In this document: in pieces, positions 3,016-62,226 of the stretch
How positions within the stretch are numbered: position 1 is the first letter of the stretch
Layout of the letters: each line of letters begins with the position of its first letter
Assembly: GCA_028023455.1 (NCBI GenBank)
Contig: JAQFVV010000009.1
Span: forward strand, 868,001 to 932,000
Direction: 5' to 3'
Origin: Epiperipatus broadwayi
Taxonomy: Eukaryota; Animalia; Onychophora
Length of the DNA stretch: 64,000 nt
The notes under the pieces: generated by a model
What the model was told of the DNA's origin: nothing
Database searches by the model: none
What the model saw: only the letters and a program-made list of their open reading frames with translations
Made by a program: the position numbers and the translations under genes

Positions 3016-3662
3016 ATATATATAATGTAGCTTTGTTACTGGATTCTGAGGAACTATTATTTGAGCTTTATGCACTAATGAGATAGAATTTTCTGTGGAA
3101 TCCATAATATTATCAAAACCTGAATTGTATTTTACAATTTAGAAACTAATTTGTAATGCAGATAAACAACGTAAGCTTTATATTATGACCTACATATAGC
3201 ATATTACTTTGACATGTTTGATAAATGTGTGTATTATATATATATGTGTGTGTGTGTGTGCCAGCAAAGTAATACTAATAATGCACATCTGAAACATTGG
3301 TTTCCTCTCACGATTTACATATATGTATGTTTAAAGGAAGAAAAAATATAAAATAGTATGCTTACATATATATATGTAGTACTGATTGTGAACATATAAT
3401 ATTATTTTATTTTTAAAACTCTTTCTCATTATAATTTAATTAAATACAAACTTTTTATTATTGAAATAAACTTTTGAAACATTTAAAAATATAAAAATAA
3501 CATACATTAAAGACATTGCCTAAGATATATATCCAAAATTTTCATTGTTATAAAAAACAATTGAATTATAAACAAAGAGCTTTGATAATTGCTCTACAAG
3601 CTTTGTGATAAATGCTTAGCAAGAGAAAACATTTAAAATATCTATCAGAAACCAAACTCAAA

Positions 3663-3704
3663 CTCCTGGCCAATGGTTTCGTGCTTTGGCACTCCTCAAA
3701 AAGG
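3663..3704 (-). ncRNA. Type I hammerhead motif, family A, degenerate
   Basis: CCTTT-TTGAGGA-GTGC CAAA GCAC-GAAA-CCATTGG-CC-AGGAG; C3 and U16.1 altered. Confidence 0.6.
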
Positions 3705-4092
3705 CGCTAGGGTAGTTTCTGACACTAGATCTAAAAATACCAACCCAAAGCCAGCATTTATCTAAGAGTTAACCATTGAGTAGAAAATCGGAAATTTTCA
3801 GACACTTAAATGTCTTCAAACCCAGCTATCTAACTCAAATATCTATATGGGGCTGAGAGATCTTCATCCAAACCATATATTAATAGTCTTAGCAATGTAA
3901 CATCACTTAAAACTTAAAGAAAAAACTATAAATAGTCAATAATAAATAGAGTCATATATCACATGACCCCCATTTCTTTTTTAAGCTTGTAAAATATAAA
4001 CAAAGAGCTTTGCTAATTGCTCAACAAGCTTTGTGATAAATGCTTAGCAAGAGAAAACATTTAAAATTTCTCTATCAAAAACCACACCCAAA

Positions 4093-4134
4093 TTCCTCAT
4101 CAATGGTTTCATGCTTTGGCACTCCTCAGAGAGG
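4093..4134 (-). ncRNA. Type I hammerhead motif, family A, cleavage site mutated
   Basis: CCTCT-CTGAGGA-GTGC CAAA GCAT-GAAA-CCATTGA-TG-AGGAA; G at position 17. Confidence 0.6.
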
Positions 4135-4179
4135 TGCTAGAGTAGTTTTTTAGATCTAGTGTCTGAAACTACTCCAGCA

Positions 4180-4221
4180 CCTCTCTGAGGAATGCCAAAG
4201 CATGAAACCATTGATCAGGGG
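4180..4221 (+). ncRNA. Type I hammerhead ribozyme, family A, core intact
   Basis: CCTCT-CTGAGGA-ATGC CAAA GCAT-GAAA-CCATTGA-TC-AGGGG. Stem I CCTCT/AGGGG, stem II ATGC/GCAT, cleavage triplet ATC, one stem III mismatch. Confidence 0.75.
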
Positions 4222-4595
4222 TTTGGGTGTGGTTTTTGATATAGATATTTTAAATGCTTTCTCTTGCTAAGCATTTATCACAAAGCTTGTTGAGAAAATA
4301 GCAAAGCTCTTTGTTTATATTTTACAGCTCAAAAAAGAAATGCTCATGTGATATGTGACTCTATTTTTTTATTTTTTATTGACTGTTTATAGTGTCTTTG
4401 CTTTAAGTCTTAAGTGATGTTATATTGCTAAGACTACTAATATATGGTTTGGCTGAAGATCTCTCAGCCCCACATAAATATTTAAGTTAGATAGCTGGGT
4501 TTGAAGACATTTAAGTTTTGAAAATTTTAGATTTTCTACTCAATAGTTAACTCTTGGATAAATGCTGGCTTCTAGTGCCTGAAATTATCCTAACA

Positions 4596-4637
4596 CTTCT
4601 CTGAGGAGTTCCAAAGCACAAAATCATTGGTCAGGAG
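4596..4637 (+). ncRNA. Type I hammerhead motif, family A, degenerate
   Basis: CTTCT-CTGAGGA-GTTC CAAA GCAC-AAAA-TCATTGG-TC-AGGAG; G12 to A at a former CpG. Confidence 0.6.
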
Positions 4638-6261
4638 TTTGAGAGTAGTTTTTGATAGAGATATTTTAAATACTTTCTCTTGCTAAGCATTTATCACAAA
4701 GTTTGTTGAGCAATTAGCAAAGCTCTTTGTTTATATTTTACAAGTTTAAAAAAAGAAATGTAGTCATGTGATATATGACTTTTTTATTGACTACAATTGA
4801 CTTATTGTTTACAATCACATAATTTTCAGCATAAGTTTCAGTCAATTCAAAAAAATCTTGGAAATTAGCATGAATCACAATTGTTGAGATTTAACTTAAA
4901 AGATTGTTTATTTTTATTTAGAAAACAACTTTCAAAATAATAATTTTTTTAATTATTTATTTAAATTACTTTACATCTTTTTTTAAAATCTAAATTAAGT
5001 AATACACTTTAACTTATGTTTTATGTGTTATAAATTAAAAAGAATAATGTTTAAAAGCAAATTCTGTTTATTCTATTCTAATCCTTCCATCTAATGTATG
5101 CTTGAGCAATCAGTAGTTGGCAGATAGTAGTGCTATTAAGTCAATATGCAGTACTATCATCCATATCCTCAGACTAGTTTCTGATGTATGATATTAATCA
5201 ATAAAAACTTGATCTTGTATGTAATGCACCTGAATTACTGACAAAGGCCATAATTCAGAAATTAGGCTGCAGATATGGACCGAATTTTCCAATAATAAAT
5301 CATGAAAAAAATACTAATGTGACATATATGTGCTTATACACTATGGATGTGAATGCAATTTACTTTTTTTTGCATAATAATGTTTTTAATTCTTTTAAGT
5401 TGTAAAACCTTTCACTACTTTTCAAGATGGTTTCTTTGGAACTTAATTAATCATTGATATTTATAATTATCACATGATTTAAAAAAAAATTAAAATTATT
5501 GATTTAGTTTATATGATTCATTAGCAGAGAATCTTCATATTAATAAAAGTTGTTTTCACAGAATATTTTTTCTCTATTTATTGCTTAAAAAATATAGTAA
5601 CTAATTAATCAAAATCATGCAATAAATTTATTATTTTTCGAAACTGAAAGTCATAAAAATAAATGCATTCTCTAATTATAAATAAAAAAAGTGTCTGAGT
5701 AGTATTGAATATATGTAAGCTATTACTCCCTAACATATAGTGCTTTATATATTTAAATATTTAACTTAACATTATAATATTAACTGTAAAGTTATATCTT
5801 TTTCAAGTTATTTGTTTTATTTTGTGTTTTTTTTCTTCATATTTTTCTAAGCTTCCTTAACATTTTCTTTCTCAAATAGTCTTAAAATCAGTATCTTTTT
5901 ATTTATTTATTATATTAATTTCTGATCATTACCTATTGATCTATTTTTTAATATTTATTTGTTTTATATTAAAATGTATAAGGAAAATAATATTATCAAT
6001 AATTTACATAAATGCATTTTCTTTTCATTTGTATTTTTTGTATCTTTTTATAATTTTCATATTCTTTTTTTTGCTACTATTTATCATATTTTTATCTATA
6101 TACATGTCACCTTATATCCTTTCTATTAAATTTTTTTATTTAAGTTACAATATCTGTTTTTTGGTTTGTTTGTTTGTAAACTCATAGTTAAAAATAAAAT
6201 TTTAAAATAGAGCTTTAAGAGATTTAAATTTGGTACATAAGAAAGAAATAACTGGCAAAAC

Positions 6262-6985: not shown

Positions 6986-7360
6986 AACAAATATAAACAT
7001 CAAGTTGATATAAAGTACAATATAGTTTTACATTTTTATTTATTATGCCAATACTAAAAAGTTAAAAATAAATAGAAGTAAAAGAATTTTTTAATATTAA
7101 GTGCTTTTATTTTCCATGCATTAAAAAGTAAAAAAATAATTGTTTCTTCAACCATAATTGAGGTTTTTAGATTTAAATCAAAATAAAATCTTGAGAGAGA
7201 ATCCATAAATTAATTAAGTCATTACTGTATCACTATTGGACAATACTCTTTCAGATTCCTTCATTATGCCTCTTTTTAGAAGAACCAGTATCAGTCTTGC
7301 CCTTGAAAAGATTCTCATTTATTTTTCTACCTAGTTTTCTCATTTTTTAAAAATACATTA

Positions 7361-7690
7361 TTGTAATTATATAGAAGGTAATCATCCCTCTTTACTAGCA
7401 CTATTAAACAATTATGTTAAAATTGCAAGGATACTCTCACCTCAATCACAAGATAGAGACTTTGAGAAAATAAGAATGACTCTTATTTTCAAACTCAAAT
7501 ATGAACCAGTCTTAGGTATCTAGAAATGAGAGTGTAAATTTATAAATCATTTGAGTTTGAAAATAAGATGGTCTTTCTTATTTTTTCAAAGTCTCTATTT
7601 TATGACTGGCCTGAGAGTATCCTTGCAGTTTTAAGATCACTGTTTAATGGCACTAGTGGGAAGGGATGATTACCTTCTATCTAATTACAA
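7361..7690. repeat. Foldback / inverted duplication, about 330 bp
   Basis: Left arm TTGTAATTATATAGAAGGTAATCATCCCT... to about 7500 matches the reverse complement of about 7550-7690. No TSD seen. Confidence 0.75.
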
Positions 7691-8287
7691 TCTAAACACT
7701 GAGCTAGTAAAATTCATTGATTATTACATAAAGTAGATAATTAATTCTATTTTACAAATAGCTAGATTTCTCTACCATTCTTCATTTCCATTCTTGAAAA
7801 ATAAATTATTAAATCTATAATTTAAAATATTATTAAAAACAGTCAAATAATTACAATATATACAGTATTTTTTTTTATTCTTAATATCCATAGCCCAATA
7901 CCATTTATCAATTATTTAATTTACCTAAATTCAAATAGTATATAACAATCCAAATATTATTACCAAATCTTTTTTTGTTGTTTAAATGAAACTTTTAATT
8001 ATTTTTTTATACTCATTTATATATTTGAAAGAAGGCATTTAAACAATTTTAAATACATATTTTCAATCCGAATCAAATTTTAAACGAACTCTTTAAAAAG
8101 AAGAAACAAGATCTGTTTTCTTATATAATTAAAATTAATGCTAACATAAATTAAGTCGAAATTAAAGTTACTTTTTTAAAATTAATTTAAAAGAAGAAAA
8201 CCTACAAATCTTTCACCTCCCCTTTCATGATTTAAAAAATTTACAAATATAAATAAAATATAAATATATTTGATTGAATACAAGTAT

Positions 8288-8980
8288 AATATGGATTTGA
8301 ACACAGAACTTTCAAGCTCTCTTCAGCCATATTTTTTATCTTATACAATGATGCACACATGTGAAAAAAATAAATGATCTCCAATAATCGTAATTCGTGC
8401 TGAATCAGCAGTTATCAGTTGGTCCAAATTATCATCTCCCATACATATATATAATCAGTGCTCAGTTTATATTAAGATAGCAAATATTCAAACTTTAATG
8501 GACAGGCTTCAATCTATTCCACCCTCCAACTTTTCAGTCATCCATACCATTGAAATTCTGATGGTGGAACACCCAAGTACCTTCTTGATACCACATTACT
8601 GTCATGCCCATATTGATCTTAGAGTGATTTAAGGCAATATGGCCATGACAATAATATTGGCAACAACAAGGGATTTGGTGTTTCATCAACAGATTTTTAA
8701 TGATATAGATAGCTGAAGAGTTAAAGGATGGCATAGATTGCAGCCTGTCCATTAAAATATGAAGATTTTCTATCTTAATATAAATTGGTACTGATTATAT
8801 ATGTGTGTGAGGGAAATGATGATTTGGATTAACTGATAAGGGCTGGTTCAGTATGAAATACATATATTGGAGATTATTTATTTTTCACATGTGTATGGCC
8901 ATGTGTATCAGTTGAATGAGATAGAGCAGATAACTGAAGGGAGCTTTAAAGTCTGTATTCAAATCCTTTATAATATAAAG
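8288..8980. mobile_element. Family D hammerhead repeat, inverted pair
   Basis: - copy at 8288-8570 and + copy at about 8650-8980, homologous to 19.2-19.9 kb, 42.4 kb and 61.1 kb. Degenerate hammerhead cores at about 8381-8425 (-) and 8828-8871 (+). Confidence 0.8.
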
Positions 8981-9779
8981 ACATAAATTTAAAAATAATA
9001 TATAGTTATCTACAAAAGATAATATATAGTCAGAAGGCATCTAAAAACAATATTCGTAATATATTTAAATTATAAAGTTTTTTTAATTAATTCATATCAC
9101 ATAAATATATATAACTGTGGCAGAATATTTTTTAGCAAAAGTTCTTTCCATTATGAGGAGCTTCTTAATTTGGGATGATATTTCAAAGATATGTATATGT
9201 ACTTTATTTATTTCATTTTTTTTTTAATGTTAAGATAAAATGTCATATATAAGCTTCCTTGGCCTCCTCTAGCTTATAGTTTTGTTAATGTACATTGCTG
9301 AAATACTGGCTTGTTCATTATTATTATGAGCTAAAAAAATTTAAAAAATAGCATTTCAAGTTAATACAAATATTGGATCCAAAATAGACTTCAGGTAATC
9401 AGTGGCTTTTTTTAGACACTAAACTTAATCAAAGTTCAAAGAGCATTCATAAAGTAGAATCAAGAGTTAAGAATTGGGAATGATTTTCTAAAGAAAATCT
9501 ACTTTTATATATATATATGATCTCTGTTTTTTATAATCTTAATGACCTCTTTTTTTCATAATTATAGATACCTTAATTCTATAAGTAATGTTAATATGTT
9601 TCCCAACAAATGTTTAAACTTTATTTTATAATTTAACTAATAATTAGGAGCAAACACAACATTAATACTCAATAGTTAATATGAAAATTCATAATTTACA
9701 TATTTTACTTTCAGAACAAGGCTCTACAAGAGTTTTTTTGTTTATTACATGGATGTTATTAGCAATAAACTATGCCTCT

Positions 9780-11700
9780 TTAAATTTTCTTTTTTAATCA
9801 TTGTGCTCTGCACATACTATTTTAATATTCCATGGATCAAAATCATGGTCAGATTCCATTTGATACTCCAGAAACACTGACTTTACATTGGAATCTTTCT
9901 TTTTATGAGAATACATATACTGATGTTGTACCAGCCTAAAGGCATTGTTTATATGCAATTTCCCATAGTAGAGTGCTTTGCAATTAGGTTTATTGCAGAT
10001 GATTTTTGTAAAATAATCTGGAGAGGCTGCTCTGGAGACAATCTGTTCTTCATATTAAAGCTGACATTAAATGAATCAGCACATATATTCTTTAACCATC
10101 ATGATAAACTAGGCATGGAGAGAGATCCACTTAATCATGTTGTCATATTCTGGAGGGTGTGTATTTAATGTAGAATAGAACTTCTTAAAAGCTTAAATGA
10201 AATGTTATACTTATAGCCTATATTAAGCAAATCTTTAATGTAAATTTCAATGTTATTATTTCAATATGCCTCATACTTGCACAAGATTTGATTTTTATTA
10301 GAAGAAACCTATAAAATCAGCCAGCTGGTGTGAGATGAAATTGCACAACTGAGAATATACTGTTTCATGAATAATAAAAGGTTTGATCATTATTTTATAG
10401 TTTATCTCATTGCCAGATCTTTGAATGTAAATATCCAAGAATCTTACTTCCATGCACTCATCTTATATTTTATAGACCATAATAAAAATGCGTCTGCATT
10501 AAATCATTTCATATTTTATTAATATTATCCTCTGATGCGCAAATTAATACATTATCTACATAGCACATATAAAATGAATTATTCACCAAAGAAATATATT
10601 TGGGAGTAATTGTTTCTTCATATTTATTTAACATTATGCTATAGAGTAGCATCATAGGCCAGCCATGCTCCAAATTTGTTGTTAGATAGCACAGTATGTC
10701 ACTATCAATACAACTCAGGGCATCAGTAACAAACTCAGTCTTGCTCTGATTAAAACCCAAATTTCTTAATACTTTGTGGAGTATATCTATAGAGCTTTGG
10801 CATGATATTCAACTGTATGGCTCAACTATATCAAGCAAAGCAAGTTTAGACTGAGAACTCAGTTTGTGTACATTTAGCAGTCACACATAAACAAGTGTTT
10901 AATTGTGAAGCATAGACAATGAGCCATTCAGCTATCAGTTTCACTGTCTTGTAAAAATAAGCACTCCAAAATCTATTAACAGTTTGAAGGAGTTATTTAC
11001 TTTGTGAATTTTTACATTTTCAAAAATTCTAGAGGAAATAGCAGCTATTGGGTAAATCCTACAATATTCTGCTTTGCTGATAGTCTTATTCTGATGCTTT
11101 CTCAATATGGATATTATGAATTTATCTTTCATTTATTTCAAATTGTAAGTTTCTATTAGTTTAAATTTTAATTTATCAATTTGCTAATTGACTTTAAACT
11201 TATATTAATCATTAGTTAACACAATGAATCGTTCACCTTATCTTCTTTCACACATCTAATTTGATTAGTTTGCAAGTAATTTTTAATTGTTTGTATATTC
11301 TTTATCCATGTGTTTTCTTTAGTTTCAGTTGTATGGGGAAATGCTTGTATCACTTTGCTCTCCAAACCGTCTTTTAAAAAAACTATGTTCATAACTAGCC
11401 TCTATGTCAGCTATTACTTCCATACAAGGGTTTTACCCTTACCCCCAACAAACTTTAGACTGAATTTAAGCAATTGCTTTACATTTCTGGGGAGATAATG
11501 GTTTGTTAAATTAATACACTTTACACTGGTTTCATTATCTATTACCATTCCCTGCCTTTTTGCCAAAAATATAAAAAAAAATTTATCATATTTTATACAC
11601 AACTTATTTGCTATATTTTGGCATTTTTTATTTAAGCTTTCAGGGATACTAAAACTTTTCCCTATATTCTTCATTCTATATAGTTCTGTTTTCAGGGCCC
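9780..11700 (-). pseudogene. Disrupted PLE ORF (reverse transcriptase plus GIY-YIG endonuclease)
   Basis: ORF-track fragments 11414-11674, 10941-11132 and 10509-10760 carry PLE RT motifs. Many stops and frameshifts; boundaries approximate. Confidence 0.8.
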
Positions 11701-12208
11701 TCTTACACCCTTGAAGAATCCCTCAAATTAATTATATTTATTAATAATCTAGAAATGTTACCTTTGATGTATAGATTGACTTATATGTATACTACAACAA
11801 TGGCCAAGACTTGATCAGAAAACATTTCACAAGAAATTCGACTCTTTCTCTTCTGACAGTTATTGCTTTTAGTATTTTCAATGCTGTATTATACTTATTA
11901 TATTTATTCATAAAATTCTATAATCTAATTTTGCTTTTTTTCTTTAGCTATATAATTCTATAAGAAGTGTTAATATGCTTCCAAAGAAAAGATTAAAGTT
12001 TATTTCACAATGTAATTAATAACTTGCTGAACAGTGCTTTCAACCTGGAAGGTCATAATCATAGTGCTCAAAGCTATCAGCTAAAACCTTAGAAAAAAAC
12101 ATGTTGATGGTTAATATGTAAGTTCGTAATTTATCCCACTTTCAGGACAAGACTTTACAAGAGTCTTTTTTTATCATGTGGATGTTATTAGCAATAAACA
12201 ATGCCTCT

Positions 12209-12313
12209 GTCAAGCATTAGTGATCGAGAGGTCAGCGACAGCTGCTTTACAAGTGGTTGTCCTGGGTTGGCGGGTTCACTTCCCGGCTGATGCTATGACA
12301 CATGAGAAAAACA
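12209..12313 (+). mobile_element. Short tRNA-derived SINE nested in the PLE pseudo-LTR
   Basis: 13-bp TSD AAACAATGCCTCT (12196-12208, 12314-12326). A-box-like GATCGAGAGGTC, B-box-like GGTTCACTTCC, A-rich tail. A second copy lies at 14.3 kb. Confidence 0.8.
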
Positions 12314-13024
12314 AAACAATGCCTCTAAATTTTTTTTTCTAATTGTTGTACTCTGCACACAATATTTTAATACTCCATGGGATTGAAATTATGACCAGAT
12401 TTTATTTGATAATCCAAAATCACTGCACATTGAAATTTTTCTTTGTGTGAGAATACATGATGTACCTTAATTACATTTAATTATAAGATATTTTAGTTGT
12501 TTAATTAATTAAATTTTTATCTTGGAGTACTAATTATACCTTGTTTTTTTTATTTTATTGTTTCCAAACACAAAAATGCAACCTTAAAATTAAATCTTAA
12601 TCTTTTTATTCTCCTTTTTTTTTTTTATAGATCTATTATTATTATTTTATTAATATATGTTAATTATGTTATTTTGAAGTAAACACATACCAAGAAATTC
12701 AACACATTTTTTTAAAAACACATTTTTTTTAAAAAATCTTAATTTCTAATAAGAAAAACAAGCTATACTATTTTAATCTATTGCGAAATATTATTATTTA
12801 CTTTTCTTCTTAAAACTTTAATTTTTCATTTTTTACTAATGAAATCTATTATCTTATTTTTTAAAAAAATTATTATAAAATATTATTTTAATAACCTCTT
12901 TAATAAAGAATTACAATGCTATTTTTTATTATCCAGCCCCACAATTACTGTTGACCAGCTCTTTGATGTGTGTGCAATATTACTGATTGAAAAAATTATG
13001 AATGACATTTTGTCAGATTGTTTT

Positions 13025-13565
13025 CCTAAAGATTTGTGGTGATGATTTTTAGTTGTATTTATATATTGGACTATTTCAGTTATCTAATTTTAAGTATTGA
13101 ATGTCTAGAAAAATTGAACTATATTTAAATATTCCAAATTACATTCAGTTGTTAGTAGTAGCACACAAGTTAGTATATGCACAATGTTTCAAGAGATATT
13201 ATTCTCCTTTTTCAGGTGTTGCTGGCCTAACCAGTGACAGTACTAGCAAGGGAATCGAACCTGGACCTTTAGATTCTTGAATATTATATTTTAATGTAAT
13301 GCTCTAACCAACAGAGCACTACTTTTTAAAATTTCAAGAATCTAAGGATCTAAGTTCAATTCCCATGCTAGTACCATCACTGCTCAGGCTAGCAACACCT
13401 GTAGAAGAGGAAAATAATATCTCTTGAAACGTTCTATATATAATAACTTGTGTGCTACTACTAAGAGTTGAATGTAATTAGAATATTTAAATATAGTTAA
13501 ATTTTTCTAAAGACATTTAATACTTAAAATTAGATAATGGAAATAATCTAATATATAAATACAAC
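13025..13565. mobile_element. Family E: tRNA-headed, hammerhead-like element with inverted duplication
   Basis: 16-bp TSD TTTGTCAGATTGTTTT (13009-13024, 13566-13581). Arms at about 13050-13282 and 13333-13565. The - strand head has an A-box GCTCTGTTGGTTAGAGC (13301-13317) and a B-box GGTTCGATTCC (13251-13261). Confidence 0.85.
13180..13218 (-). ncRNA. Minimal type I hammerhead-like motif, family E
   Basis: CAC-CTGAAAA-AGGAG AATAATAT CTCTT-GAAA-CA-TT-GTG. The other arm (13396-13436, +) reads CTGTAGA...GAAA-CG-TT. Inferred consensus is CTGAAGA...GAAACGTT with palindromic AACGTT. Confidence 0.55.
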
Positions 13566-14257
13566 TTTGTCAGATTGTTTTGTCTGAAAAAAAAATCATC
13601 AGTGATCAAACAACGATCAACTGATTGGGATAGTTGTGTCATCAATTAAAAAACCATATAATTTCAAATGTTTTAATTAATAATTTTTTTTCTGCGATAT
13701 ATACATGCAAATATTTTTATGAATAAAGATGATTGTTAAAGACTGTTTGATAAGAAACTTCACACATTTGGTATAAAATTACTTTGATTAGACTTAATGA
13801 AATAACATTGGTCTGCTCTATTTTTTTGTTGTTGTTGTATTGTTTAGGTTTGACTGAAAACTTTTCTATCAAAGTATTATTACTCTGATCATAAAATAGA
13901 CGTTTAGAAAATAATTAATTAATTAAAATATGGCTGATATTTCAATGCAACTGTAATATGTTTTTTTCAGAGCTTTATTTTTTTTAAAATTTATAAAAAT
14001 GTGTGTTTAAATTCTTTAATTTCTTCTTTTTTCTCATTCTCAAAATTATTATTTTGAAAGTGGTAAACAATATTTTTTCTAATAACTTTTTCAAAATTGC
14101 ATTTACTTTATTAAGTTTACACTTTTTATTCATAATTCTAGAATATGTATCTCATTAAAATTCTATAAATATATTCTTCATTTCTGATGTTTATTGTGCA
14201 ATTGGTGTGGAAAGGAACCGATATTGCAAAGTGATTTCATTTGTCTGTATATGTTAC

Positions 14258-16653: not shown

Positions 16654-16810
16654 GATGGAAAATCAGGGATTAAAAGTGGTGCTGGTTCCACACAAAATAC
16701 ATATATTGGAGATCATTTATCTTTTTCATGGTATGTGGTCATGTGTGTCAATTGTATAAAATAGAGTGAATAGTTTTAGGGAGTTTAAAAGTCTGAGTTC
16801 AAGTCCCTTC
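16654..16810 (+). mobile_element. Family D fragment
   Basis: GTGCTGGTTCCACACAAAATACATATATTGG...AAAAGTCTGAGTTCAAGTCCC matches other D copies; hammerhead core decayed. Confidence 0.65.
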
Positions 16811-17256
16811 TAATTACATTAAGTTTAAAGTAGACAATATACACATATTTAAATATTATTACAGTATAGTTTTTATATATTCTATTTTTAAGTTAATTAC
16901 TTTCATTATGTCTTAATATAAATAATTTTTAAATAAAATTGTATAACAAGTTTATGTATATAAAGTAAAAACATAAATATAATTGGGTATTATCCATGAA
17001 TTTAAGCATCTTTCCAAAGGCTCAGAACCAAATAAATATGAAATGGGTATATATATATTTCCATTCTTGCTATTAAAAGGTGTGAAGGTTGCTTTGACAG
17101 CAGTTATCAAATATTGGTTGCTATATTTATTGTGAATGTTTAGGTGGTTACTGGTTGAAAACTAATTATATATATATATATCACTTTAAAGATTTCTTAG
17201 TAACTTATAAAGTATTAAACAATAGTACTATGCAATTTAACATAATTGTAAAGTGA

Positions 17257-17349
17257 AACAGGCAAAAACTCTCCATATAGTGTTGCCACTCAGTGCAAGC
17301 CAGAGTAATCAATGGATGTCAGAAGGTTCGTGGTAGATCATGTGATGTG
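17257..17349. mobile_element. Family C, short 5'-inverted insertion
   Basis: 13-bp TSD AATTGTAAAGTGA (17244-17256, 17350-17362). About 75 bp in one orientation plus the family 3' end (GATCATGTGATG) in the other. Confidence 0.8.
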
Positions 17350-18179
17350 AATTGTAAAGTGACAGATTTGAGAGCCAAAAGTTTTTAGATTGAAGTGTGA
17401 CCTATCATTTCTGATGCTTTAATATCATATGACTTTTTAGACAAATTTTTATACTAAAATAAAAGAAAGAATCAAGTAAATTACATTATTTCAAAATATA
17501 AATAATTATTTAATTTTAATAACAAATAAATAGTACAAGATAGCAATTATCTGAAGTCTGTGTGATTAATTATTCAAACAACTGCTACTTTGCATTCTCT
17601 AAAATTAAATTATCTATCTTAGTGAGGTGTCTATTATATTGAAGCACATTATTTTTGTTACTTAATGCATTTATATGCAACAAAACGATTTGATAACGGA
17701 TTTATTCGGGAAAAAAAAATGCTTATAATTATCAAAGTATTTTAGAAAGTTTCAACGTAAAATACAATTATTATTGCAATTTATAAAAAATATATTTTTT
17801 TTTAGAATTACAAAATATAATTTTATATTGAATTGTTCAAGAAAATATTACTACCTCAGTTTTATTTTAATGTATTTGTATTTTCATTTATAAAAATATA
17901 TCCATGATTCAATTAACTCCAATACAATCATTTTGTCAGTATTTTAATTTTTGTAAAGCATCTTAGTTCTAATGAAAATGTAAAGAACAGCGTTTCTTTA
18001 TAATATTTTGGTTAAACCACTAAACATCACATGATCACCATCTCATACTAGCACATAATTGTTGTAAACAAAGGCAAAACTCTCCATATAGTAGTGCCAC
18101 CCTGTGCTAACCAGAGTAATCAATAGATGCCAGAAGGCTTGTGCATAAAATCCCTATCCAGTGCCTACTCATCCAATAT

Positions 18180-18219
18180 CCCCAGACTAATTTCTGGCTT
18201 GTGGCCATCATCAGTGATG
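18180..18219 (-). ncRNA. Type I hammerhead ribozyme, family C, core intact
   Basis: CATCA-CTGATGA-TGGC CACAA GCCA-GAAA-TTAG-TC-TGGGG. Confidence 0.75.
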
Positions 18220-18428
18220 AGCCTTGGATCTGAGAGCACTGCACCTAGATCTTAGGATCCTGAGTTCAGACCCATATGACTATATAAGCTATTGAGCTTA
18301 AATTGAAAATATTTTTGTGTTTTCAATTTCATTCTCATAGTTTTGTAGTAAAGTAGAGTTAAGAGGTGGCTGCTGGAGGGTTGCATTAGATCCTAAGATC
18401 TAGGTGCAGTGTTCTCAGATCCAAGGCT

Positions 18429-18468
18429 CCTCATTGATGATGGCCACAAGCCAGAAACTAGTCTGGGG
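18429..18468 (+). ncRNA. Type I hammerhead ribozyme, family C (C3U variant)
   Basis: CCTCA-TTGATGA-TGGC CACAA GCCA-GAAA-CTAG-TC-TGGGG; stem III is the palindrome ACTAGT. Confidence 0.75.
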
Positions 18469-19160
18469 ATATTGGATGAGTAGGCACTGGATAGGGATTT
18501 TATGTGCAAGCCTTCTGGCATCTATTGATTACTATGGTTAGCACAGGGTGGCACTACTATATGGAGAGTTTTGCCTTTGTTTATAATAATTTGGTTATTA
18601 TAACCATTTCTAAATTATTTTTTAAAAAATATTTAATTATTTTTTTAATTCAAAATACTGTTGTGACGATGTTACATAATTATATAACTGCTTATTTTTT
18701 TATTTATTATCGAAATTATTTGATTTTTTGAATTAACATAATTGATATCCTCTTGTAATTCAAATAAATAATTCAATATTAATTGTTAAAACATTAAATA
18801 TAATTTTAAAAAGTTTATCAAATGGTTCTTATGATATAATTTTGATTGACAAAATTCATATAAGATTATTGATTAAGACATTTGATGATTTAAATACAAT
18901 ATTGCAAAATAAAATAGTGTGGACTTAAATGACAGGAATAGTGCATGTTATTATATAAAATTCCAAAACAACTTTTTTAAAAAGACATGTTTTTTTTTTT
19001 ACTGGATTAAACTTCATGCAAGTATAAATATATGACCAATATTTAGATTATTTTCTAAAATCTTTGTTAATACATAATTAATCTTAAATATAAAATAAAA
19101 ATATACAAATCAAAAAATACCAAAAAACTGTAGACTTTTTAAGGATTATAATGGTAATTT

Positions 19161-19950
19161 GACTTGAGGTCAACATGGACATAACAACAATATTGGCATC
19201 AGCATGGGATTTGGGCATTCTATCATCAGATTTTCAAGCCTGTCCATTAAAGTATAAAGATTTGCTATCTTAATATAAACTGAGCACTGATTATATATAT
19301 GTGTGAGAGATGACAATCTGGACCAACTAATGGGTTCTGGTTCAGCACGAAATACATATATTGGTGATTATTTATCTTTTCTACATGTGTGTGGTCATAT
19401 GTATCAGTAGTATGAGATAGTGTGGATAGTTGAGGTTGCTTGAAAGTCTGAATTCAAATCCCCTATATTTACAATTCAAATAAGTTCCAGGTATAAGAAT
19501 GCCTGTATTTCAAATCTTACACATTAAGCCTGCATTCTGACCATCCCTCTTCTATATATTTAAATAGATATTGTCCTATACATGAGTGACTTGAGGTCAA
19601 CATGGCATAACAAAATTATTGGCATCAGCATGGGATTTGGGCATTCTATCATCAGATTTTCAATGGTATGGATGGCTGAAGAGTTGGAGGTTGGAGTAGA
19701 TTGAAGCCTGTCCATTAAAGTATAAAGATTTGCTCTCTTAATATAAACTGAGCACTGATTATATGTGTGTGTGAGAGAGAGAGAGAGAGAGATAATAATC
19801 TGGACCAACTGATGAGTGTTGGTTCAGCACGAAATATGTATATTGGTGATTATTTATGTTTTCTGCATGTGTATGGTCATGTGTATCAATAGTATAAGAT
19901 AGTGTGGATAGTTGAAGGTTGCTTGAAAGTCTGAGTTCAAATTCCCTATA
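19161..19950 (+). mobile_element. Family D head-to-tail tandem (about 1.7 units)
   Basis: GACTTGAGGTCAACATGG at 19161 and 19589. Hammerhead positions at 19322 (decayed) and 19804 (intact). Confidence 0.85.
19804..19847 (+). ncRNA. Type I hammerhead ribozyme, family D, intact
   Basis: ACCAA-CTGATGA-GTGTTG GTT CAGCAC-GAAA-TATGTA-TA-TTGGT. Perfect 5-bp stem I, 6-bp stem II starting G-C, stem III derived from palindromic ATACGTAT, triplet ATA. Confidence 0.85.
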
Positions 19951-41710: not shown

Positions 41711-41916
41711 ACACACAGAGACAAAACTCTCCATATAGTAGCGCCACCAAGTGCAAGCCAGAGTAATCAATGGATGCATGAAAATTTGTGCATAAAATTC
41801 CTATCTAATGCTTATCTAGTGCACTGACTGGCACTACTGTATGGAGAGTTTTGCCATTGTGAAAAACAGCTTGTGTAAGCATAAAGAATGGTGATCATGT
41901 AATGTATGTTGGAATT
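41711..41916. mobile_element. Family C, 5'-inverted insertion
   Basis: CAAAACTCTCCATATAGTAG... paired with ...CTACTGTATGGAGAGTTTTG and the family 3' end. Candidate TSD TATGATGG (41703-41710, 41917-41924). Confidence 0.75.
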
Positions 41917-46983: not shown

Positions 46984-47162
46984 TGTAATATTTAAACAGC
47001 ATTAAGCTGTTGCACATGCGCTTTGAAGATTTTAACTATAAATGAATGAATACTATCTTTTCCAAAGACTTTATCATGTGTTTGAAGTGTTAGTATTCAT
47101 TCATTTATAGTTAAAATCTTCAAAGTGCATGTGCAACAGCTTAATGATGTTTAAATATTACA
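46984..47162. repeat. Near-perfect 72-bp-arm hairpin
   Basis: 46984-47055 is the reverse complement of 47091-47162 with about 2 mismatches and a 35-nt loop. Ends are TGTAAT...ATTACA. Confidence 0.85.
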
Positions 47163-50100
47163 ATAATTATAGTTGTAAAAACTATGTATTTTTATCTCCA
47201 GTTAACTTGATGTAGATATGAGGGTTATTGTATATAGTAGTAATTTGGAGATTGGTTTGCTTGGATATATTATAAATTATAAATATTGTTATAAGGTTTT
47301 GATAGTTTATGAATATAATTTTATCATAGTTATTTAGAAAGATGAGTGATGCCGAAGAAATCAATGATCTCGAGGAGATCCAAAAAATGGCAACTCCTAG
47401 TTTTCAAGCCTGACTTATGCTGATGTTATAATCTTTTGAGAGGATATTTGCTGATCATTTTAAGAAATTAAAAAAAATGAAGGAGTCTCAATCTCAAGAA
47501 TTTAAAGAAATGAAGGAATCTTTTGAGAATAAATTAGATATTATTGAGAGCCAATTGATCAAATTTCAAGTATCTTTTGAAAACGGGCTAATTGGATCAT
47601 AGGCATTTTTAGAAACTAAAATAGAGAAAGCCAGATTAGAAATTAATTATCAAAATGACAAAAGGGACTCAGATAAAAAATTGGAAGAGATAAAAGATAG
47701 TTTTATGAGTTATAGAATGAAGTTGGAAGATATGTTGAAAAAACTAGAAATTAAAATGATAGAATCAAACAAACATCAGATCAGGTTAGTATTGTAAATT
47801 ACAAATTTTAAAATAAAGAGCTACAGTCAAATCAGTTCATCAATCATTTTAAAGTGGAGTTAGAAATTAAAGAATATTAGTGGTCATTTGGCCATTGAGA
47901 TGAATATGTCTAAATCCAAAGAGGATCAAATCCAAAGCAAAATTGAATTGAAAGAGACTAGAAAAGGAATGGCTGAGATTATAAATGAATCTAAGGCTGA
48001 AATAAAGGAGTCAAGAAAAACCAATGCAAAACTTAGTGGCAATTTAAAAAAATCAAAAGGAAATGAAGGAAGTACTGATAAAGTGCCAAGAGTGTCCAGA
48101 TCAATTAAAGGAGAAAAGATTAGGCATTTTAGATGAATTGGATAAAGTTTGAGAATGAACAAGGAAATGCAGTTAGAGGCTATATTTCAGGATATTTAGT
48201 AGAAGGTCTTAGAAATTCAGATTGCTAAGGGAAAGAGCTATGATTCTAGATTTTATGTACATAGAACTGAGATACATATTAAAGAGGTATTTAAATTAAG
48301 TAGTGATGCTACAACTCCCAGTCAGGACCAAGTGTTTGCCAAGTTATTAATGGAGAATAGTTATGTAGTCCAGAATATAAAGAATGAGGATGTACTTGTG
48401 AGTAGTTCAATGGTTTTTAAATTTGAGAATTAAGCCCCTTTGGAGGGAACATTTGGAAAATCTTTCAAAGTTTCTTCAAAGCCTTGAAATACTGTTTGCT
48501 ATATGCTCCTTTATAAAGAAAAGAAATTTGTCATATCTAGCAATCACCTTTATGTCACTGCAAAGGACTGGTAGCAGTTTCTGTTGATCATTCTCAAATA
48601 TAGGGAGACTTCAAATAGTTTCTGGGGTGAAGATTGTCAGGATAACATATGCTATCAAATCACCCTAGAAAAGTATGCTACACATAAGGGTAGTTACACA
48701 CTGTTTTTCCATAATCAGGCAGTTAAGCTAAGACTTTGACAGCTTTTCTCTTATATGAGCATCAGATTGTCAGGATTATCTGGCACAACTTGCCTCAGCA
48801 AATTGAGAACATTTTAATTGTTGCTGATAGATATACTATTGAAGTGTTTGAGATCCTGGATGCTGTTGAGACAAGTGAGCATAACTCTGAAACTAGATAT
48901 AAAAGTATAAGAGATGCTCAAGATTCTCATAGTTACCCTGTTGCCAATATTAATTTTGTGATTATAGGGAAACCTAATTGTAATAGAATACATCAAAGTA
49001 GAAGACATAGACAATCAGCCCCTTATTACAAAATTTAATAATTACTCCAATGTTGTGTAAGGATTAAGTGATGGTAAGCTGTTAACTAGTGTGGTTCAAA
49101 CTACTCCCAAAAAAATTATTAAAATATCTAATATAAAAAGAGTGCATAGTAGAGAAGGCCTCATGAAAAAGTTCCTCACTGTGGATGCCTCATACTAACT
49201 TAAGGAACAATGATAGTGGAAGGTAAGTACTATAAATTTATTAGAACCTCCTATTTTGTACAATTGCTCCATTATTAAAGTTTCTATTGAGAGTGTTATT
49301 GTTAATGCTTTGTTAAAGTCATAAAATCAAGCATCAATATTATCCTCAATTACTTCTGATAGTTATAAGTGCAAATAAGTCTTTGTTACCTGTAAAACAA
49401 ATTCAGGTTACATTGGCAAATGAAAAAAGGATGAAGCTTTCAAACAAGTAAATCTGGCTTAATGTAAATATCAATAAATCTGAATTTGGGCAGGTCTTTT
49501 TAATAATGCCTGATTTTATTCATGAAACTATAATTGGTTCTGACTTTAAAAATAAACTTTTTACTTGGAAGAATGAAATATGTGATTATTGTGATAATGT
49601 AGGTTTTCATTAAACTCACTTTATGTGTGTACATAAAGCTGAAATTAAGTTAAATATAAAAATTAAATTAAATAGTTCTAATGTTCTAAATTTAGTTGTA
49701 AAGAGCAATTATATCAATTGGTGTTTCAGTACAGAAATATATTTTCAAAAATACTAGGCATAGTAAAAGGTTATATCCATTGGATAAAATGAAAAGTTGA
49801 AGTATCTTTCCAAACAGCAAATGTACTCAATTCCATATCAATACCAAGCAGAAGCACAACAGAAAATCAATAAAATAATTGAATGGCATATTGTTAAGAA
49901 AAGCTCTTCAGTCTATGTTAATCCCCTTGTTATTGTAAGGTAAAAAAATGGCTGTCAGGATTTGCCTAGATGCTCATGTGCTGAATCAATTGACTATTCT
50001 AGAGCATGATATTATTTCACCTGTCCATGAACTATTGATCAATTTCAGAAATAAAACCACTTTTACAACATTTGATTTAACTGCCAGTTATTGGCAAATT

Positions 50101-50761
50101 CCACTGCATGTTGATAACCAAAGTACACTGCTTTCAGTTATGAAGGCCAGTTTTATATTTTTGAGGGGTGGAGCTGTCTTAACAATCAAGTGTTTGAATA
50201 TGATTTTTTCCAGTCAATTAAAAGAAAAAATCATTATGTATTTGGACGATATTATTATCGCATTGAAAGTGTGAATGAGCATCTAGAGTTTAAAGTTATT
50301 TTTCTATGAGTCTTCTGTAAATAATATTAAGAATAATATAGAAAAATGTACTTTTGCTGCCATGGAAATAACTTTTCTAGGTCATTTAATAAATGACCAG
50401 GGGATCAAATTCCATTCTGAGAAAATTGGAACCATTCAGAACTTTCCCATGTCTAAAACCAAGAAACAACTTAAATCATTCCTCAGTCTATGTCATTATT
50501 ATCACAAGTTTTACAGAAATTTTGTCTGTGATACTGTTTTATTGTCAGTATTGTTAAAAAAGAATGAGAAATGGAAGTAAAATATTGAACATATATTAGA
50601 ATTCAACAAGATCAAGATTATATTCTTAGAAAGAGCTATTTTATCTGTAAACTGACAGTAATAATCATGGATTAGGAGTAATCTTATACCAATTAGATGA
50701 TTTACAAAAGCTCCAAATTCTGCATTTATTAAATAGGTACTCGAAAGGGCCTGAATTGAAC

Positions 50762-53544
<2,783 letters not shown>

Positions 53545-59347: not shown

Positions 59348-59470
59348 TGGATGGCTGAAGTCTATCAGCCCATAGCTATTGGTTGGTGTGGGTTTGAAGA
59401 CATGTACTGTAGATTTCCAGATTATAAGGTGTGTGGTTTTAGATCTAGGTCTGAATCCCTGACCTCTCAC
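59348..59470 (+). mobile_element. Diverged family A-like fragment
   Basis: GGCTGAAG..TCAGCCC, GGGTTTGAAGACAT and TTTTAGATCTAG blocks match family A; no recognisable ribozyme core. Confidence 0.45.
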
Positions 59471-60987
59471 TAAGCTTACAGGTATTTGAATCTCACAGAT
59501 GTAATTGTTTCTAATGACTGCAGATTATTTGTAAGTAGCAACTATCTCCAGAAATTTGCTCTATGTGCAGAAATAGTTTTCGATGAATAATGATTAAGTG
59601 AAAAGAATTATGATATAGTCAAGTAACAATGATCATCCAATTGTTGAATGTGGTCAGATTATAAAAATATTCTTGATAAATCTAAAACATCTGCTTTATA
59701 AGCAATTTTGTTTAGTATCTTTGTTTTTTATCATTCTATATGTGTTAACATAATTGAATGCCATTTTATTCTTATTGTTGTAGCCTTTAATTGCAATAAT
59801 ATTTATAATTGAATTTAAATTAATTAATTAGTTTTGGGCATAAAATTGGATATATTGTATGCTATTTTTCTTTTTTGCATTTTTAAAGCAATTTTATTTT
59901 TTTCTGTTTCAGCTATAACTTGAGTCTTTATCAGAAATCATATAAAACATTAAATAGTTCTCTTATAAAGAGTGCAGGATCAGCTGAAATAATTAAAATG
60001 AAATTAAATAGCTTTGAAAATTGAAAAAAAAAAAAAAAGAATTGGTGTATTACACTAAATTGAGTAATAAAGAAATAGGGAAGACATTAAATCATATATT
60101 GAAGCATAAAATTTGGTAATAAAGTTTTGTTTATTAATTAATATTTCTGTTTTAATGGTATTGATTCCATAAACATGTATAATGTTGTAAAAAAAATGTA
60201 ACATCAATGAACTCATATTTTATAAATAACTTTCCTAAAATAATTGAAAAATGTTTTAGGAGTTTTAAGTAAGAACCATAGTTAGAAAAAATATATTCAA
60301 TACACTCATCTAGTAATGAGGACTTTTTAATGGATCAATTGATATTAAAAACAATGAGACTTTCTGGTCATTGCTCTTTGTGAATTTTGAAAACAATATA
60401 AAATCTATATGGGATATTTTATGTTTAAAAAAGTTAAATGTAACATTAACTGTAATATTTTCTCTCTCTTTTTTTTTTTTGAATTGTTTCAAATGAGCAT
60501 ATATTTATTAGTATTTATTTTTAATGGAATCCCAAAGTATTTATAATTAAGAATTTAAATCATTAATGCACTTCTTGTGCCTAATCATAAATATTTTATG
60601 TTTTTAGAGCACCCATATACTGTTGAAAATATAAACAAATATTAAATAATAATTATTGATTTTAGTATCTATAATGTTAGATATATATTCCATATATTAC
60701 ATTTATTTTTAATAATATAAAACCATTTCAAATGTATGCATATTTTTATATTAGTACAGCAGAAATAATAATAAAATAAATAAACATTTACTAACTAATG
60801 TCTTTGCCCTTTGCTTTATTAAACAAAATTTAAATGATAACTATGAAATGACTATTTTAATATCACAGCAAGTAAAAAAGAAATATTTACCAATTATTTT
60901 TTTATATTGCCTTTTTTTGAAATGCACATGAGCTTATATTAATGATACTCTCTCTCCCCTCCCCCATCTCAATTTAAAATACTACTA

Positions 60988-61540
60988 GAGTGGAGAGTGG
61001 TGTGAAAGTCTGTGCTCATATGCCCTATATATTACATATATAGACACAGGTATATAATAAGCCTGTGTTTCAGTTATTACATAGTAGAGATGTCTGCCCA
61101 TCCCTTGTATATGTATTAAATGGATTATATCCTGTACATGAGGGGTCAGATTGACCTTAGGTTAACATGGGTGTGACAAGAATCTTGGTCTCAAGGTGGT
61201 CTTTGAGTGTTCCATCATCAGATTTTCAATTGGATGGATGGTTGAAGAGATGGAGTGAGGAGTGGATTGAAGCCTGTCCATTAAAGTATGAAGATTGGCT
61301 ATCTTAATATATATCTGAGCACTTATAGCATATATGTGTAGAAATGGTAATCTGGACCAACTGATGATTGCTGGTTTAGCATGAAATACATATATTGGTG
61401 ATTATTTATCTTTTGACATATATGTGTTCAAGTGTATCAGTATTATGAGATAGAGTGGTGGGTGGTGTGAAAGTCTGTGCTCATATGCCCTATATATTAC
61501 ATATATAGACATAGGTAAATAATAAGCCTGTGTTTCAGTT
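60988..61540 (+). mobile_element. Family D: one unit (about 465 bp) plus about 88 bp terminal redundancy
   Basis: 10-bp TSD AATACTACTA (60978-60987, 61541-61550). 60988-61077 is repeated at about 61452-61540. Confidence 0.85.
61356..61399 (+). ncRNA. Type I hammerhead ribozyme, family D, core intact
   Basis: ACCAA-CTGATGA-TTGCTG GTT TAGCAT-GAAA-TACATA-TA-TTGGT; T/T mismatch at the base of stem II. Confidence 0.7.
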
Positions 61541-61989
61541 AATACTACTACAGATGTAATAAATTTTCAATTCAGAATATATATATATATGTACTATGTT
61601 TTAGTATCCATTAGAACCATAGAAATACATTAACAATTTTTATTAGTCATTCATTAGACTAGAGATTATTCAATAATGAATTTTTAACACCTTGCGTGAG
61701 AGTGGTGTAGTGAAATTTACACTACAGAAATACATGATACAGAAATATGCATATACTGTATTGGTTTCTAAACTTTTTTGCCATTTCTCATTGACAAATC
61801 AGAGTCCTAATCCAATATTCTCCACATCAACATTTATATTTTGTTAATAATAATAAATCTTATTTCTTTATGTTTTAAATCTTATAATTTATAAATATAA
61901 TAACTATTTATATCATCCTTTTTTTTTGAACATTTAGAAAAGATTTAACTTCTCCATCCCAACTTTTCTTATTTTGTTACAAGTTTAAA

Positions 61990-62226
61990 GTAAACATCAC
62001 ATGATTACCATCTCTTATGCTAGCACATAACTGTTATTAAAGAGGCAAAACTCAGTGCTCTCTGATCCAAGGCTCCTCACTGGCAAAAGCCACAAGCCAG
62101 AAACTAGTCTGGAGATATTGGATGAGTAGGCACTAGATGGGGATTTTATGCACAAGCCTTCTGGCATCCATTGATTACTCTGGTTGGCACAGAGTGGCAC
62201 TACTGTATGGAGAGTTTTGCCTGCTT
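61990..62226. mobile_element. Family C, inverted insertion with decayed hammerhead
   Basis: Family 3' end on - (61990-62052), then a + segment containing CCTCA-CTGGCAA-AAGC CACAA GCCA-GAAA-CTAG-TC-TGGAG (62075-62114). Confidence 0.8.

Follow-up and report, generated by a model that had tools for sequence, protein, structure and literature searches.

Hammerhead repeat families of Epiperipatus broadwayi carry the insertion footprint of Penelope-like elements

Five repeat families with hammerhead ribozyme motifs (A-E) lie in the stretch of the Epiperipatus broadwayi genome analysed here (the window: 64,000 nucleotides of contig JAQFVV010000009.1, 26% GC, from an assembly of 5.6 Gb), and all five show the published insertion footprint of Penelope-like elements (PLEs). 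Their mobilisation by PLE machinery, which the first-pass annotation had proposed, is therefore well supported, being strongly indicated by insertions with arms placed head to head, a tail on just one of them and long target duplications. Families A-D are very probably non-coding, non-autonomous units copied by a PLE reverse transcriptase-endonuclease, and family E the 3' end of a PLE. The kind of element is already known, as non-LTR retrozymes or non-autonomous PLE derivatives.

Self-BLAST and repeat finding placed the five families where they had first been noticed; together they make up 11% of the window. We count about 14 insertions with 22 arms rather than the roughly 18 insertions or fragments originally reported. 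The unit measures ~416-428 bp in family A, 378-379 bp in B, 457 bp in C and 482 bp in D. No ORF of 90 aa or more was found in A-D, and their multi-unit arms close on themselves within <500 bp. With a short non-coding tandem unit, one type I hammerhead and no LTR, PBS or PPT, A-D have the make-up of non-LTR retrozyme units; family E, a PLE 3' end, does not. First-look candidates across the genome number at least 7514 for A, 3815 for B, 1932 for C, 4247 for D and 5302 for E. The window features of families A-D are as follows.

3570-4792: family A insertion, head-to-head arms (-)3570-4148 and (+)4155-4792, tail of ~55-60 nt on the right arm only
3557-3569 and 4793-4805: family A target duplication, 13 bp (12/13)
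4176-4225 (+): best family A hammerhead in the window, 54 bits
3659-3708 (-), 4089-4138 (-), 4592-4641 (+): other family A hammerheads
24683-25083 (+): family B-like single arm, 80% identity, hammerhead 24931-24978(+)
24668-24682 and 25084-25098: target duplication of the B-like arm, 15 bp (14/15)
33750-34893: family B insertion; (-) arm 33750-34661 of 2.4 tandem units (378-379 bp) ending at the long terminus, (+) arm 34657-34893 ending at the short terminus
33873-33918 (-), 34251-34296 (-), 34622-34664 (-, weak), 34799-34844 (+): family B hammerheads
33736-33749 and 34894-34907: family B target duplication, 14 bp (13/14)
17240-17332 (-): family C fragment, unit positions 42-132
18015-18579: family C insertion, arms (-)18015-18259 with a ~42-nt tail and (+)18260-18579 without a tail
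17997-18014 and 18580-18597: family C target duplication, 18 bp (17/18)
18176-18223 (-): family C hammerhead that formally passes the strict descriptor as intact
18425-18472 (+): its partner hammerhead, with U for C3
26228-26411 (-): family C single arm, hammerhead 26327-26374(-)
41711-41911: family C insertion of 3' ends only, arms (-)41722-41814 with short terminus and (+)41803-41905 with long terminus, no hammerhead
41698-41710 and 41912-41924: target duplication of the preceding insertion, 13 bp (12/13)
61991-62220: family C insertion; 63-nt (-) arm 61991-62053 ending at the long terminus, (+) arm 62053-62220 with short terminus and hammerhead 62071-62118(+)
8250-8984: old family D insertion (~78% identity), arms (-)8354-8619 and (+)8622-8972, weak hammerhead remnants 8381-8422(-) and 8824-8875(+), possible AT-rich target duplication of 13 bp
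16679-16818 (+): family D fragment, 140-nt 3' end stopping at the short terminus
19160-19967 (+): family D single arm, 1.7 units of 482 bp
19318-19369 (+) and 19800-19851 (+): hammerheads of that arm, the former decayed, the latter passing the strict descriptor as intact
42386-42684: family D insertion, (-) arm 42386-42569 with hammerhead 42507-42558(-), and an odd (+) piece 42587-42684
60986-61557 (+): old family D arm (73% identity), hammerhead 61352-61403(+)

The published hallmarks (Craig et al. 2021, PMC8557442) of a PLE insertion are partial tandem copies, a 5'-truncated copy in inverted orientation, and one end that bears a tail. A partial tandem with an adjacent inverted 5'-truncated copy was found in window insertions A, B1, C1, C3, C4, D1 and E. 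Besides the window, we examined how insertions are built at 29 loci of B, 28 of D and 21 of C, which had been taken as best matches and not at random; head-to-head pairs occurred at 21/29 B and 16/28 D loci, and 15 pairs were fully resolved among the 21 C loci. Every insertion represents a single event, and the usual one consists of two head-to-head arms with their 3' ends outward and one target duplication around the whole inverted pair. Each arm starts at a fixed point either 55-130 nt (short terminus) or 125-175 nt (long terminus) past the predicted cleavage site and runs for 0.1-3 units toward a variable 5' end. One arm is nearly always short and the other long: termini were paired short/long in 43 insertions, both short in four and both long in none (p = 1.4e-9 against 0.5). 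A countable one-tail rule emerges from the head-to-head insertions scored outside the window, 47 in number and belonging to B, C and D, with one tail in 43, none in 4 and two in 0. Tails measure ~62 nt in B, 48 in D, 45 in C, 55 in A and 35 in E, a range of 35-65 nt, as against 30-40 nt in published PLEs. Of 28 insertions, 19 had the tail on the shorter arm, a share that is not significant. Among single-arm insertions, an inverted tail-only remnant at the 5' end was seen in three family C cases, and in B and D none exceeded shuffled controls. Target duplications of 12-18 bp were found in at least 15 loci, and of 13-18 bp in six to seven window insertions.

Tandem units, LINE reverse-transcriptase fragments in the flanks and matches of E sequences to A-box and B-box motifs could also be expected of satellites or LINE-dependent SINEs that spread by unequal crossing-over or LINE machinery and carry the hammerhead as a passenger. 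We consider this very unlikely. The copies are scattered over many contigs and each has a target duplication of its own, no family has a poly(A), A-rich or simple-repeat tail, and head-to-head arms with one tail are a PLE-specific footprint (PMC8557442). A tRNA-derived SINE would combine a tRNA-related head with a LINE-type 3' tail; tRNA detectors gave no match here and an A-rich tail is lacking.

Family E acts as an internal control for mobilisation by PLE machinery, with the same footprint in the window (an 18-bp duplication and one tail).

13025-13563: family E insertion of head-to-head, 5'-truncated PLE 3' ends, arms (-)13025-13322 and (+) about 13334-13563, tail of ~35 nt on the (-) arm only
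13007-13024 and 13564-13581: family E target duplication, 18 bp (17/18)
13215 (-) and 13399 (+): cores of PLE-type minimal hammerheads, both decayed
9570-12480 (-): decayed autonomous PLE, partial tandem, reverse-transcriptase YVDN motif near 10560
9734-10030 and about 12100-12480: endonuclease remnants of the decayed PLE (-)

Each window arm of family E carries part of a tRNA-like A/B-box module, which in this family has an A-box-like string and an exact B-box string; neither ARAGORN nor the Rfam tRNA models find anything on the family E head. Pol III promoter box-like sequences near the ribozyme also occur in Schistosoma Sm-alpha / Sj-alpha and newt satellite 2, whose type I hammerhead has a weak palindromic helix III needing dimers, and Sm-alpha has been proposed as a LINE-dependent SINE. 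Here, in contrast to Sm-alpha, the module lies within the 3' UTR of a coding PLE and not in a free SINE, and the copies, unlike those of Sm-alpha and newt satellite 2, lack an A-rich tail and are dispersed rather than satellite. A fixed 5' end of family E at the tRNA-like start proved to be an artefact of taking a truncated window arm for the reference; actual arm lengths run from 270 to 727 nt.

Longer copies of family E (loci L096 and L094) have a GIY-YIG endonuclease motif upstream, and the family is the 3' tail of a coding PLE and not a non-coding family. The original claim that no family encodes protein thus holds for A-D and fails at family level for E, whose longer copies carry the endonuclease frame. 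The decayed PLE at 9570-12480 means that coding PLEs are present in the same window as the hammerhead families. Possible partner elements are plentiful: 149,537 candidates belong to a single family of PLE endonucleases, with open frames of up to 932 aa and 2.5-kb tandems. Pfam gave no match on the PLE endonuclease frames; in a feature search the frame at locus L038 groups with GIY-YIG clusters.

The case of family E, which looked non-coding in the window and yet is a PLE tail, raises the possibility that every one of the five families consists of nothing but 3' ends of coding PLEs that have lost their 5' part, with no separate non-coding elements. PLE endonuclease remnants near family F arrays (L008, L009; F is a sixth family, elsewhere in the genome, with a period of about 410-428 bp) and near a B insertion (L038) point the same way. 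Against this, arms of A, B, C, D and F run through whole units back into their own unit without an open frame, and we judge the possibility very unlikely. An autonomous PLE would have one ORF with reverse transcriptase and GIY-YIG; A-D have no ORF, and the window copies of E are short tails. Shared 3' sequence linked no autonomous PLE to A-D, the comparison covering the one readable PLE tail (L038), which carries a different A3-U8 motif.

The majority sequences of A-D carry a type I hammerhead core with a potentially cleavable H17 after helix III, and in family E the core is present with CpG decay. The core and stem strings first given for A-D are identical to the genome-wide majority sequences; the string for family E (AGGAG/CTCTT) turned out to be a window variant of a genome-wide form with CUGAAGA, one extra A and a 6-bp helix II. 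Helix I has 5-6 bp and helix II 3-6 bp in A-D. A self-complementary stem III, claimed for every family, is borne out as a palindrome in B-E, whereas most copies of A have a 3-bp hairpin; helix III of A is palindromic in one intact copy (L057). The first-pass annotation went too far in calling the families independent, since A and B have a conserved module of 140-225 nt in common that is also present in family F.

Within the window, CUGANGA..GAAA occurs 13 times against 2.06 expected, a number reached in 0/100 shuffles. Intact copies of families A-D and of the related family F were used to build a covariance model, which matched 16 window motifs at E<1e-4 and 3 weakly, in addition to 2 variant E-type motifs; these searches were run in two parts, up to 18605 and from 18647, with 18606-18646 masked. 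Over 150 copies, 90.3% of helix cells are paired against 72.9% in shuffles, and slid partners reach at most 44%. Changes on both sides affect 186 cells against 55.6, lie in all three helices and make 10/12 pairs covary, with the caveat that the alignment is fitted to the model and the changes fall mostly between families, so that they represent few independent events. The family majority sequences retain the core and all three helices across the genome, and the stems covary, one of the points on which the first-pass annotation had let its proposal stand or fall.

Many single copies are damaged. Only two window motifs pass the strict intact descriptor, 18176-18223(-) and 19800-19851(+), and all four family A hammerheads in the window bear at least one damaging change; elsewhere in the genome ~30% of B, C and D copies pass. 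The Rfam Hammerhead_1 model (RF00163), put forward earlier as a check, matched no window copy even at E<=10, nor the intact B, C, D and E copies tried; an intact family A copy (34.3 bits) and family F (up to 40.2 bits) do exceed its cut-off of 34 bits. The Rfam scan of the window gave only microRNA-like matches, on foldbacks of the families, which mimic microRNA precursors.

The missing Rfam matches in the window and the damaged motif in most copies could suggest that the strings resemble hammerheads by mere chance, in repeats rich in AT. This is already refuted by the six-fold excess over shuffles, by majority sequences that retain the motif in otherwise unrelated families and by compensatory changes in all three helices; intact copies above the Rfam cut-off add to this.

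For the insertion itself, the Anolis PLE offers an in vitro analogue in which two internal reverse-transcription start sites are used and both DNA strands are cut and extended (Frangieh et al. 2024, PMC11167929). By this analogy, both strands of a staggered cut would prime reverse transcription at two internal RNA start sites, and the resulting cDNAs may be joined by template switching. The hammerhead was presumably inherited from a PLE pseudo-LTR, and its short palindromic helix III implies that it would act as a dimer.

An alternative that differs from copying by PLE machinery as set out above only in the template RNA is a true retrozyme cycle, the one put forward in the first-pass annotation, in which the hammerhead-cut unit RNA is ligated to a circle and rolling-circle reverse transcription yields the multi-unit arms. 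Such circles are documented in corals, mussels and axolotl (PMC7229834), and arms of up to ~3 units with variable 5' ends would suit them. Young family F insertions have units that are 99.5-100% identical within an arm, 98.8-99.1% between arms and 93-95% between insertions, although a multimeric transcript of a homogeneous array could also give such units. Stable folding is predicted for units of B (z = -6.25 against shuffles) and C (z = -3.97); D (z = +0.48) and A (z = +0.51), represented by old copies, fold no better than shuffles. On the other hand, arm 5' ends are not enriched over chance at the predicted cleavage site, so that the genomic copies give no sign of a cleaved or circular RNA template. 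A large class of B arms has a discrete ~1.2-unit form whose 5' ends precede the cleavage site by 15-38 nt, a pattern that fits a linear RNA with a fixed start, and the Anolis PLE needs no cleavage for insertion, uncleaved RNA being its main substrate (PMC11167929). The circular template is possible, but we lean against it.

The near-obligatory short/long pairing, taken with the likeness of units within an arm, would mean that a dimeric PLE complex copies two separate RNAs at once, one per start site and one per DNA strand, and helix III may pair the templates. We offer this as an unlikely but attractive idea. If it is true, template pairing by the palindromic helix III, rather than or besides RNA cutting, would explain why the motif is retained though cleavage is dispensable for insertion in vitro, and why arm 5' ends of B and D cluster inside the hammerhead. 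The genomic copies would then be a natural record of how PLE enzymes work.

Among described systems, the metazoan non-LTR retrozymes (Cervera & de la Pena 2020, PMC7229834) resemble A-D in several ways: their tandem units are non-coding, poor in GC and equipped with a single type I hammerhead, their target duplications exceed 4 bp, and a genome holds several families of them, in thousands of copies, together with PLEs. The units here, at 378-482 bp, are at or above the published 150-450 bp, and the insertions mostly hold 1-3 units in head-to-head arms whereas retrozymes form long arrays. The PLE footprint of one tail and inverted arms is absent from the text of that paper. PLEs with minimal hammerheads in their pseudo-LTRs (Cervera & de la Pena 2014, PMC4209133; PMC8557442; PMC11167929) have the same insertion anatomy, and their termini likewise lie tens of nt past the hammerhead; A-D differ from them in having no reverse transcriptase or endonuclease gene and in hammerheads that look more canonical. 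The Chlamys PLE derivatives, such as MRC1 in Chlamydomonas (PMC8557442), are also non-coding, with pseudo-LTRs and head-to-tail multi-copy insertions made via PLE machinery, but they occur in green algae and lack canonical hammerheads.

Which enzyme moves animal hammerhead retrozymes has been argued before on two grounds, co-occurrence in 2020 and pseudo-LTR phylogeny in a 2026 preprint. The preprint concludes, as we do, that retrozymes derive from and depend on PLEs, on co-occurrence and pseudo-LTR phylogeny mainly in vertebrates, whereas we rely on the insertion footprint, seen in the AT-rich genome of an animal; a search of its text found 'inverted' once, tails unmentioned, and neither tails nor target duplications used as evidence. 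The insertion scars described here, with non-coding hammerhead families and a true PLE tail side by side under the same footprint, are thus a third, independent line of evidence for PLEs as movers of retrozymes. From the two termini of each family one can predict the points at which a PLE reverse transcriptase would start on these short RNAs, and at 0.4-0.5 kb the families could serve as compact natural templates in the in vitro assay of Frangieh et al. With at least 22,000 first-look candidates among the five families together, the finding also matters for annotating the large genome of E. broadwayi.

The repeat families reported in the first-pass annotation were recovered in the window at the places it had given by repeat finding, TRF and self-BLAST; periods range from 378 to 482 bp, and inverted pairs are numerous. 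The assembly comprises 5.6 Gb in 18,588 contigs and the window has a GC content of 23-29%. The window has 13 occurrences of CUGANGA with GAAA 4-20 nt downstream, versus 2.06 expected, and 13 was reached in 0/100 dinucleotide shuffles. An Rfam scan, which had been proposed as a check, returned no hammerhead in the window, either at the gathering threshold or at E<=10; the sole matches were microRNA-like and lay on foldbacks. We therefore trained our own covariance model on 14 intact copies belonging to A-D and to F, a related sixth family found elsewhere in the genome. With filters off and the window searched as two pieces split at 18605/18647, this model matched 16 motifs at E<1e-4 and three weak ones. 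The two motifs of family E needed a different architecture and were found by eye and script. A strict descriptor required an exact core, at least 3 bp in each of helices I and II, an A15.1-U16.1 pair and H17; in the window it was passed only by 19801-19850(+) and 18177-18222(-). The repeat and hammerhead observation is real, and the copies in the window are mostly decayed.

In permissive Rfam scans, the foldback junctions at 4111-4203, 13233-13381 and 18229-18419 score as plant/animal microRNA precursors, as does a hairpin at 47001-47145 derived from an unclassified repeat. The window also contains a (TTA)91 microsatellite (51068-51340) and two unclassified inverted-repeat pairs (51405-51674 with 52597-52866; 7360-7480 with 7571-7691), which may be other foldback insertions.

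First-look candidates in the whole assembly, all lower bounds, number at least 7514 for A, 3815 for B, 1932 for C, 4247 for D and 5302 for E, with identities to the window copies of 81-86% (A), 93-96% (B), 94-97% (C), 86-89% (D) and 84-88% (E). Hammerhead regions were drawn from 111 genomic loci (6 to 82 regions per family), and their genome-wide majority sequences reproduce the core and stem strings previously assigned to A-D. The stem covariation that the first-pass annotation had asked for is also present: over 150 model-aligned copies, 90.3% of helix cells are paired, compared to 72.9% in shuffles and at most 44% with slid partners, and 10 of 12 helix pairs show changes on both sides. These represent few independent events, since most of them separate one family from another and the alignment is biased in favour of the model. 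Even so, the combination of unrelated flanks, a shared core and different yet complementary helices is hard to explain otherwise. Column conservation is lowest at the CpG sites of helix III, as methylation decay would predict. Among the copies of B, C and D genome-wide, approximately 30% are formally intact, which fits neutral decay after insertion. The Rfam cut-off of 34 bits is passed by an intact A copy (L057:883-925, 34.3 bits) and by family F hammerheads, which score up to 40.2 bits.

The main result of our analysis is the anatomy of the insertions. Mapping with multi-unit queries revealed that every mapped arm, i.e., the copy in one orientation within an insertion, has its 3' end at one of two fixed termini.

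3' termini of arms, in nt from the predicted cleavage site
A: two classes, separated by about 55 nt
B: +55-71 or +124-135
C: +115-124 or +156-178
D: +109-118 or +155-167

The 5' ends vary, with arm lengths from 0.1 to about 3 units. The majority of insertions consist of a head-to-head pair with both 3' ends outward and the arms usually abutting within a few bases, and a direct repeat of 12-18 bp of target DNA lies on both sides of the whole pair. Considering the extra stretch of the long terminus as a tail, the 47 readable head-to-head insertions comprise 43 short+long, 4 short+short and 0 long+long combinations (binomial p = 1.4e-9 for one-tail pairing against the most generous null, n = 47). 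The window matches this genome-wide anatomy, with exactly one tail in each of the insertions A, B1, C1, C3, C4 and E.

Insertions in the window with their target duplications
3570-4792, insertion A, 13 bp
13025-13563, insertion E, 18 bp
18015-18579, insertion C1, 18 bp
24683-25083, insertion B2 (single arm), 15 bp
33750-34893, insertion B1, 14 bp
41711-41911, insertion C4, 13 bp

Penelope-like elements (PLEs) are characterized by frequent 5' truncation, partial tandems that form pseudo-LTRs, an adjacent inverted 5'-truncated copy and a tail of 30-40 bp that is often found at one end only (Craig et al., PMC8557442). A PLE protein from Anolis cleaves both DNA strands and extends them, initiating reverse transcription at two neighbouring positions within the RNA, some 85-92 nt beyond the hammerhead cut; the tail corresponds to the interval separating these two start sites, and insertion proceeds without need for hammerhead cleavage (Frangieh et al., PMC11167929). 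The A-E elements agree with all of these hallmarks, although their tails are somewhat longer (35-65 nt vs. 30-40). The insertion footprint strongly indicates that A-D are retrozyme-like, non-autonomous PLE dependants.

The first-pass annotation had counted five retrozyme-like families. This description suits A-D, whereas E is, as read from its sequence, the 3' tail of a PLE. E arms measure 270-727 nt once longer flanks are used, and in longer copies the hammerhead is preceded by a PLE-type GIY-YIG motif some 230 nt upstream. L096:573-836 is open through this motif without a stop; in L094 the motif is interrupted by stops. The claim that no family encodes protein thus holds for the window repeat units, within which none of the nine window ORFs of at least 90 aa lies, but not for these longer E copies. 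In the E hammerhead, an additional A lies between positions 9 and 10.1, helix I has 3 bp and helix III (ACGU) is loop-less. Its helix II has 6 bp and a closing pair that was probably ancestrally G-C, because both CpG decay products are seen. An extra A, a 6-bp helix II, a short helix I and a loop-less helix III define PLE minimal hammerheads (PMC4209133). Being a real PLE end with the footprint of A-D, E provides an internal positive control. A segment situated between the E endonuclease frame and hammerhead contains a tRNA D-arm-like A box together with an exact B box (window 13233-13340; also L096 around 960-1060). None of the detectors tried (ARAGORN, Rfam) called this segment a tRNA, no tRNA genes were found in the window, and our literature search found no description of such a segment at this position in PLEs. 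A start of E at the tRNA-like head was rejected as an artefact of the window's truncated reference.

A 137-aa endonuclease frame adjoins a B insertion at locus L038. Its family has 149,537 first-look candidates, in which open frames reach 932 aa and tandem units repeat at about 2.5 kb. The frame is not recognized by Pfam; a feature search groups it with eukaryotic GIY-YIG clusters. Its 3' flank holds a hammerhead-like motif with A3-U8 replacing C3-G8.

PLE copies
L038:91-615 and L038:616-1140, intact PLE endonuclease frame followed by the A3-U8 hammerhead-like motif
window 9570-12480(-), decayed autonomous PLE, partial tandem, on motif evidence

The decayed window copy shows the YVDN motif of a reverse transcriptase near 10560 as well as two endonuclease remnants (9734-10030; about 12100-12480), with a hammerhead-like motif downstream of one remnant at 12062(-) that again has the core pair A3-U8 instead of C3-G8. 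Elsewhere in the window, a 108-aa frame at 49948-50274(+) with a weak reverse-transcriptase (RVT_1) match is probably a LINE fragment, and several loci (L027, L033) are likewise flanked by LINE fragments.

Among the mapped arms, 5' ends show no enrichment at the predicted cleavage site. In B and D they cluster inside the hammerhead (15/52 arms in a 31-nt span and 16/52 in a 51-nt span, respectively; p about 1e-5 for each), yielding a distinct class, about 1.2 units long, that resembles a mini pseudo-LTR/body/pseudo-LTR; family C arms do not show this clustering. Exactly one arm ends inside the hammerhead in 10 of 21 head-to-head B insertions, which would correspond to the joining of a finished cDNA to an incomplete one. 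Compared with shuffles, folding is far better for units of B and C and no better for those of A and D.

Family F (unit 410-428 bp; e.g., L001:519-2784, among loci L001-L010) is not present as such in the window, has a 140-225 nt module in common with A and B and forms head-to-head arrays with at least three nearly identical units per arm. In young insertions, unit length is arm-specific, and identity among units is 99.5-100% inside one arm, 98.8-99.1% across arms and 93-95% across insertions; this comparison of three loci, two of them possibly duplicates, hints at two template molecules per event. In L006, L008 and L009 (near 1500-1600), the F arm junction lies inside the hammerhead and is accompanied by a repeated 28-nt partial motif, resembling the product of polymerase slippage or template switching at helix II.

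This kind of element is already known. The PLE link of retrozymes was proposed in 2020 (Cervera & de la Pena 2020, PMC7229834), and a 2026 preprint, whose text makes no mention of tails and uses "inverted" once, argued for it on phylogenetic grounds. What our analysis adds is the count of the one-tail rule and a side-by-side control, with E standing beside A-D.
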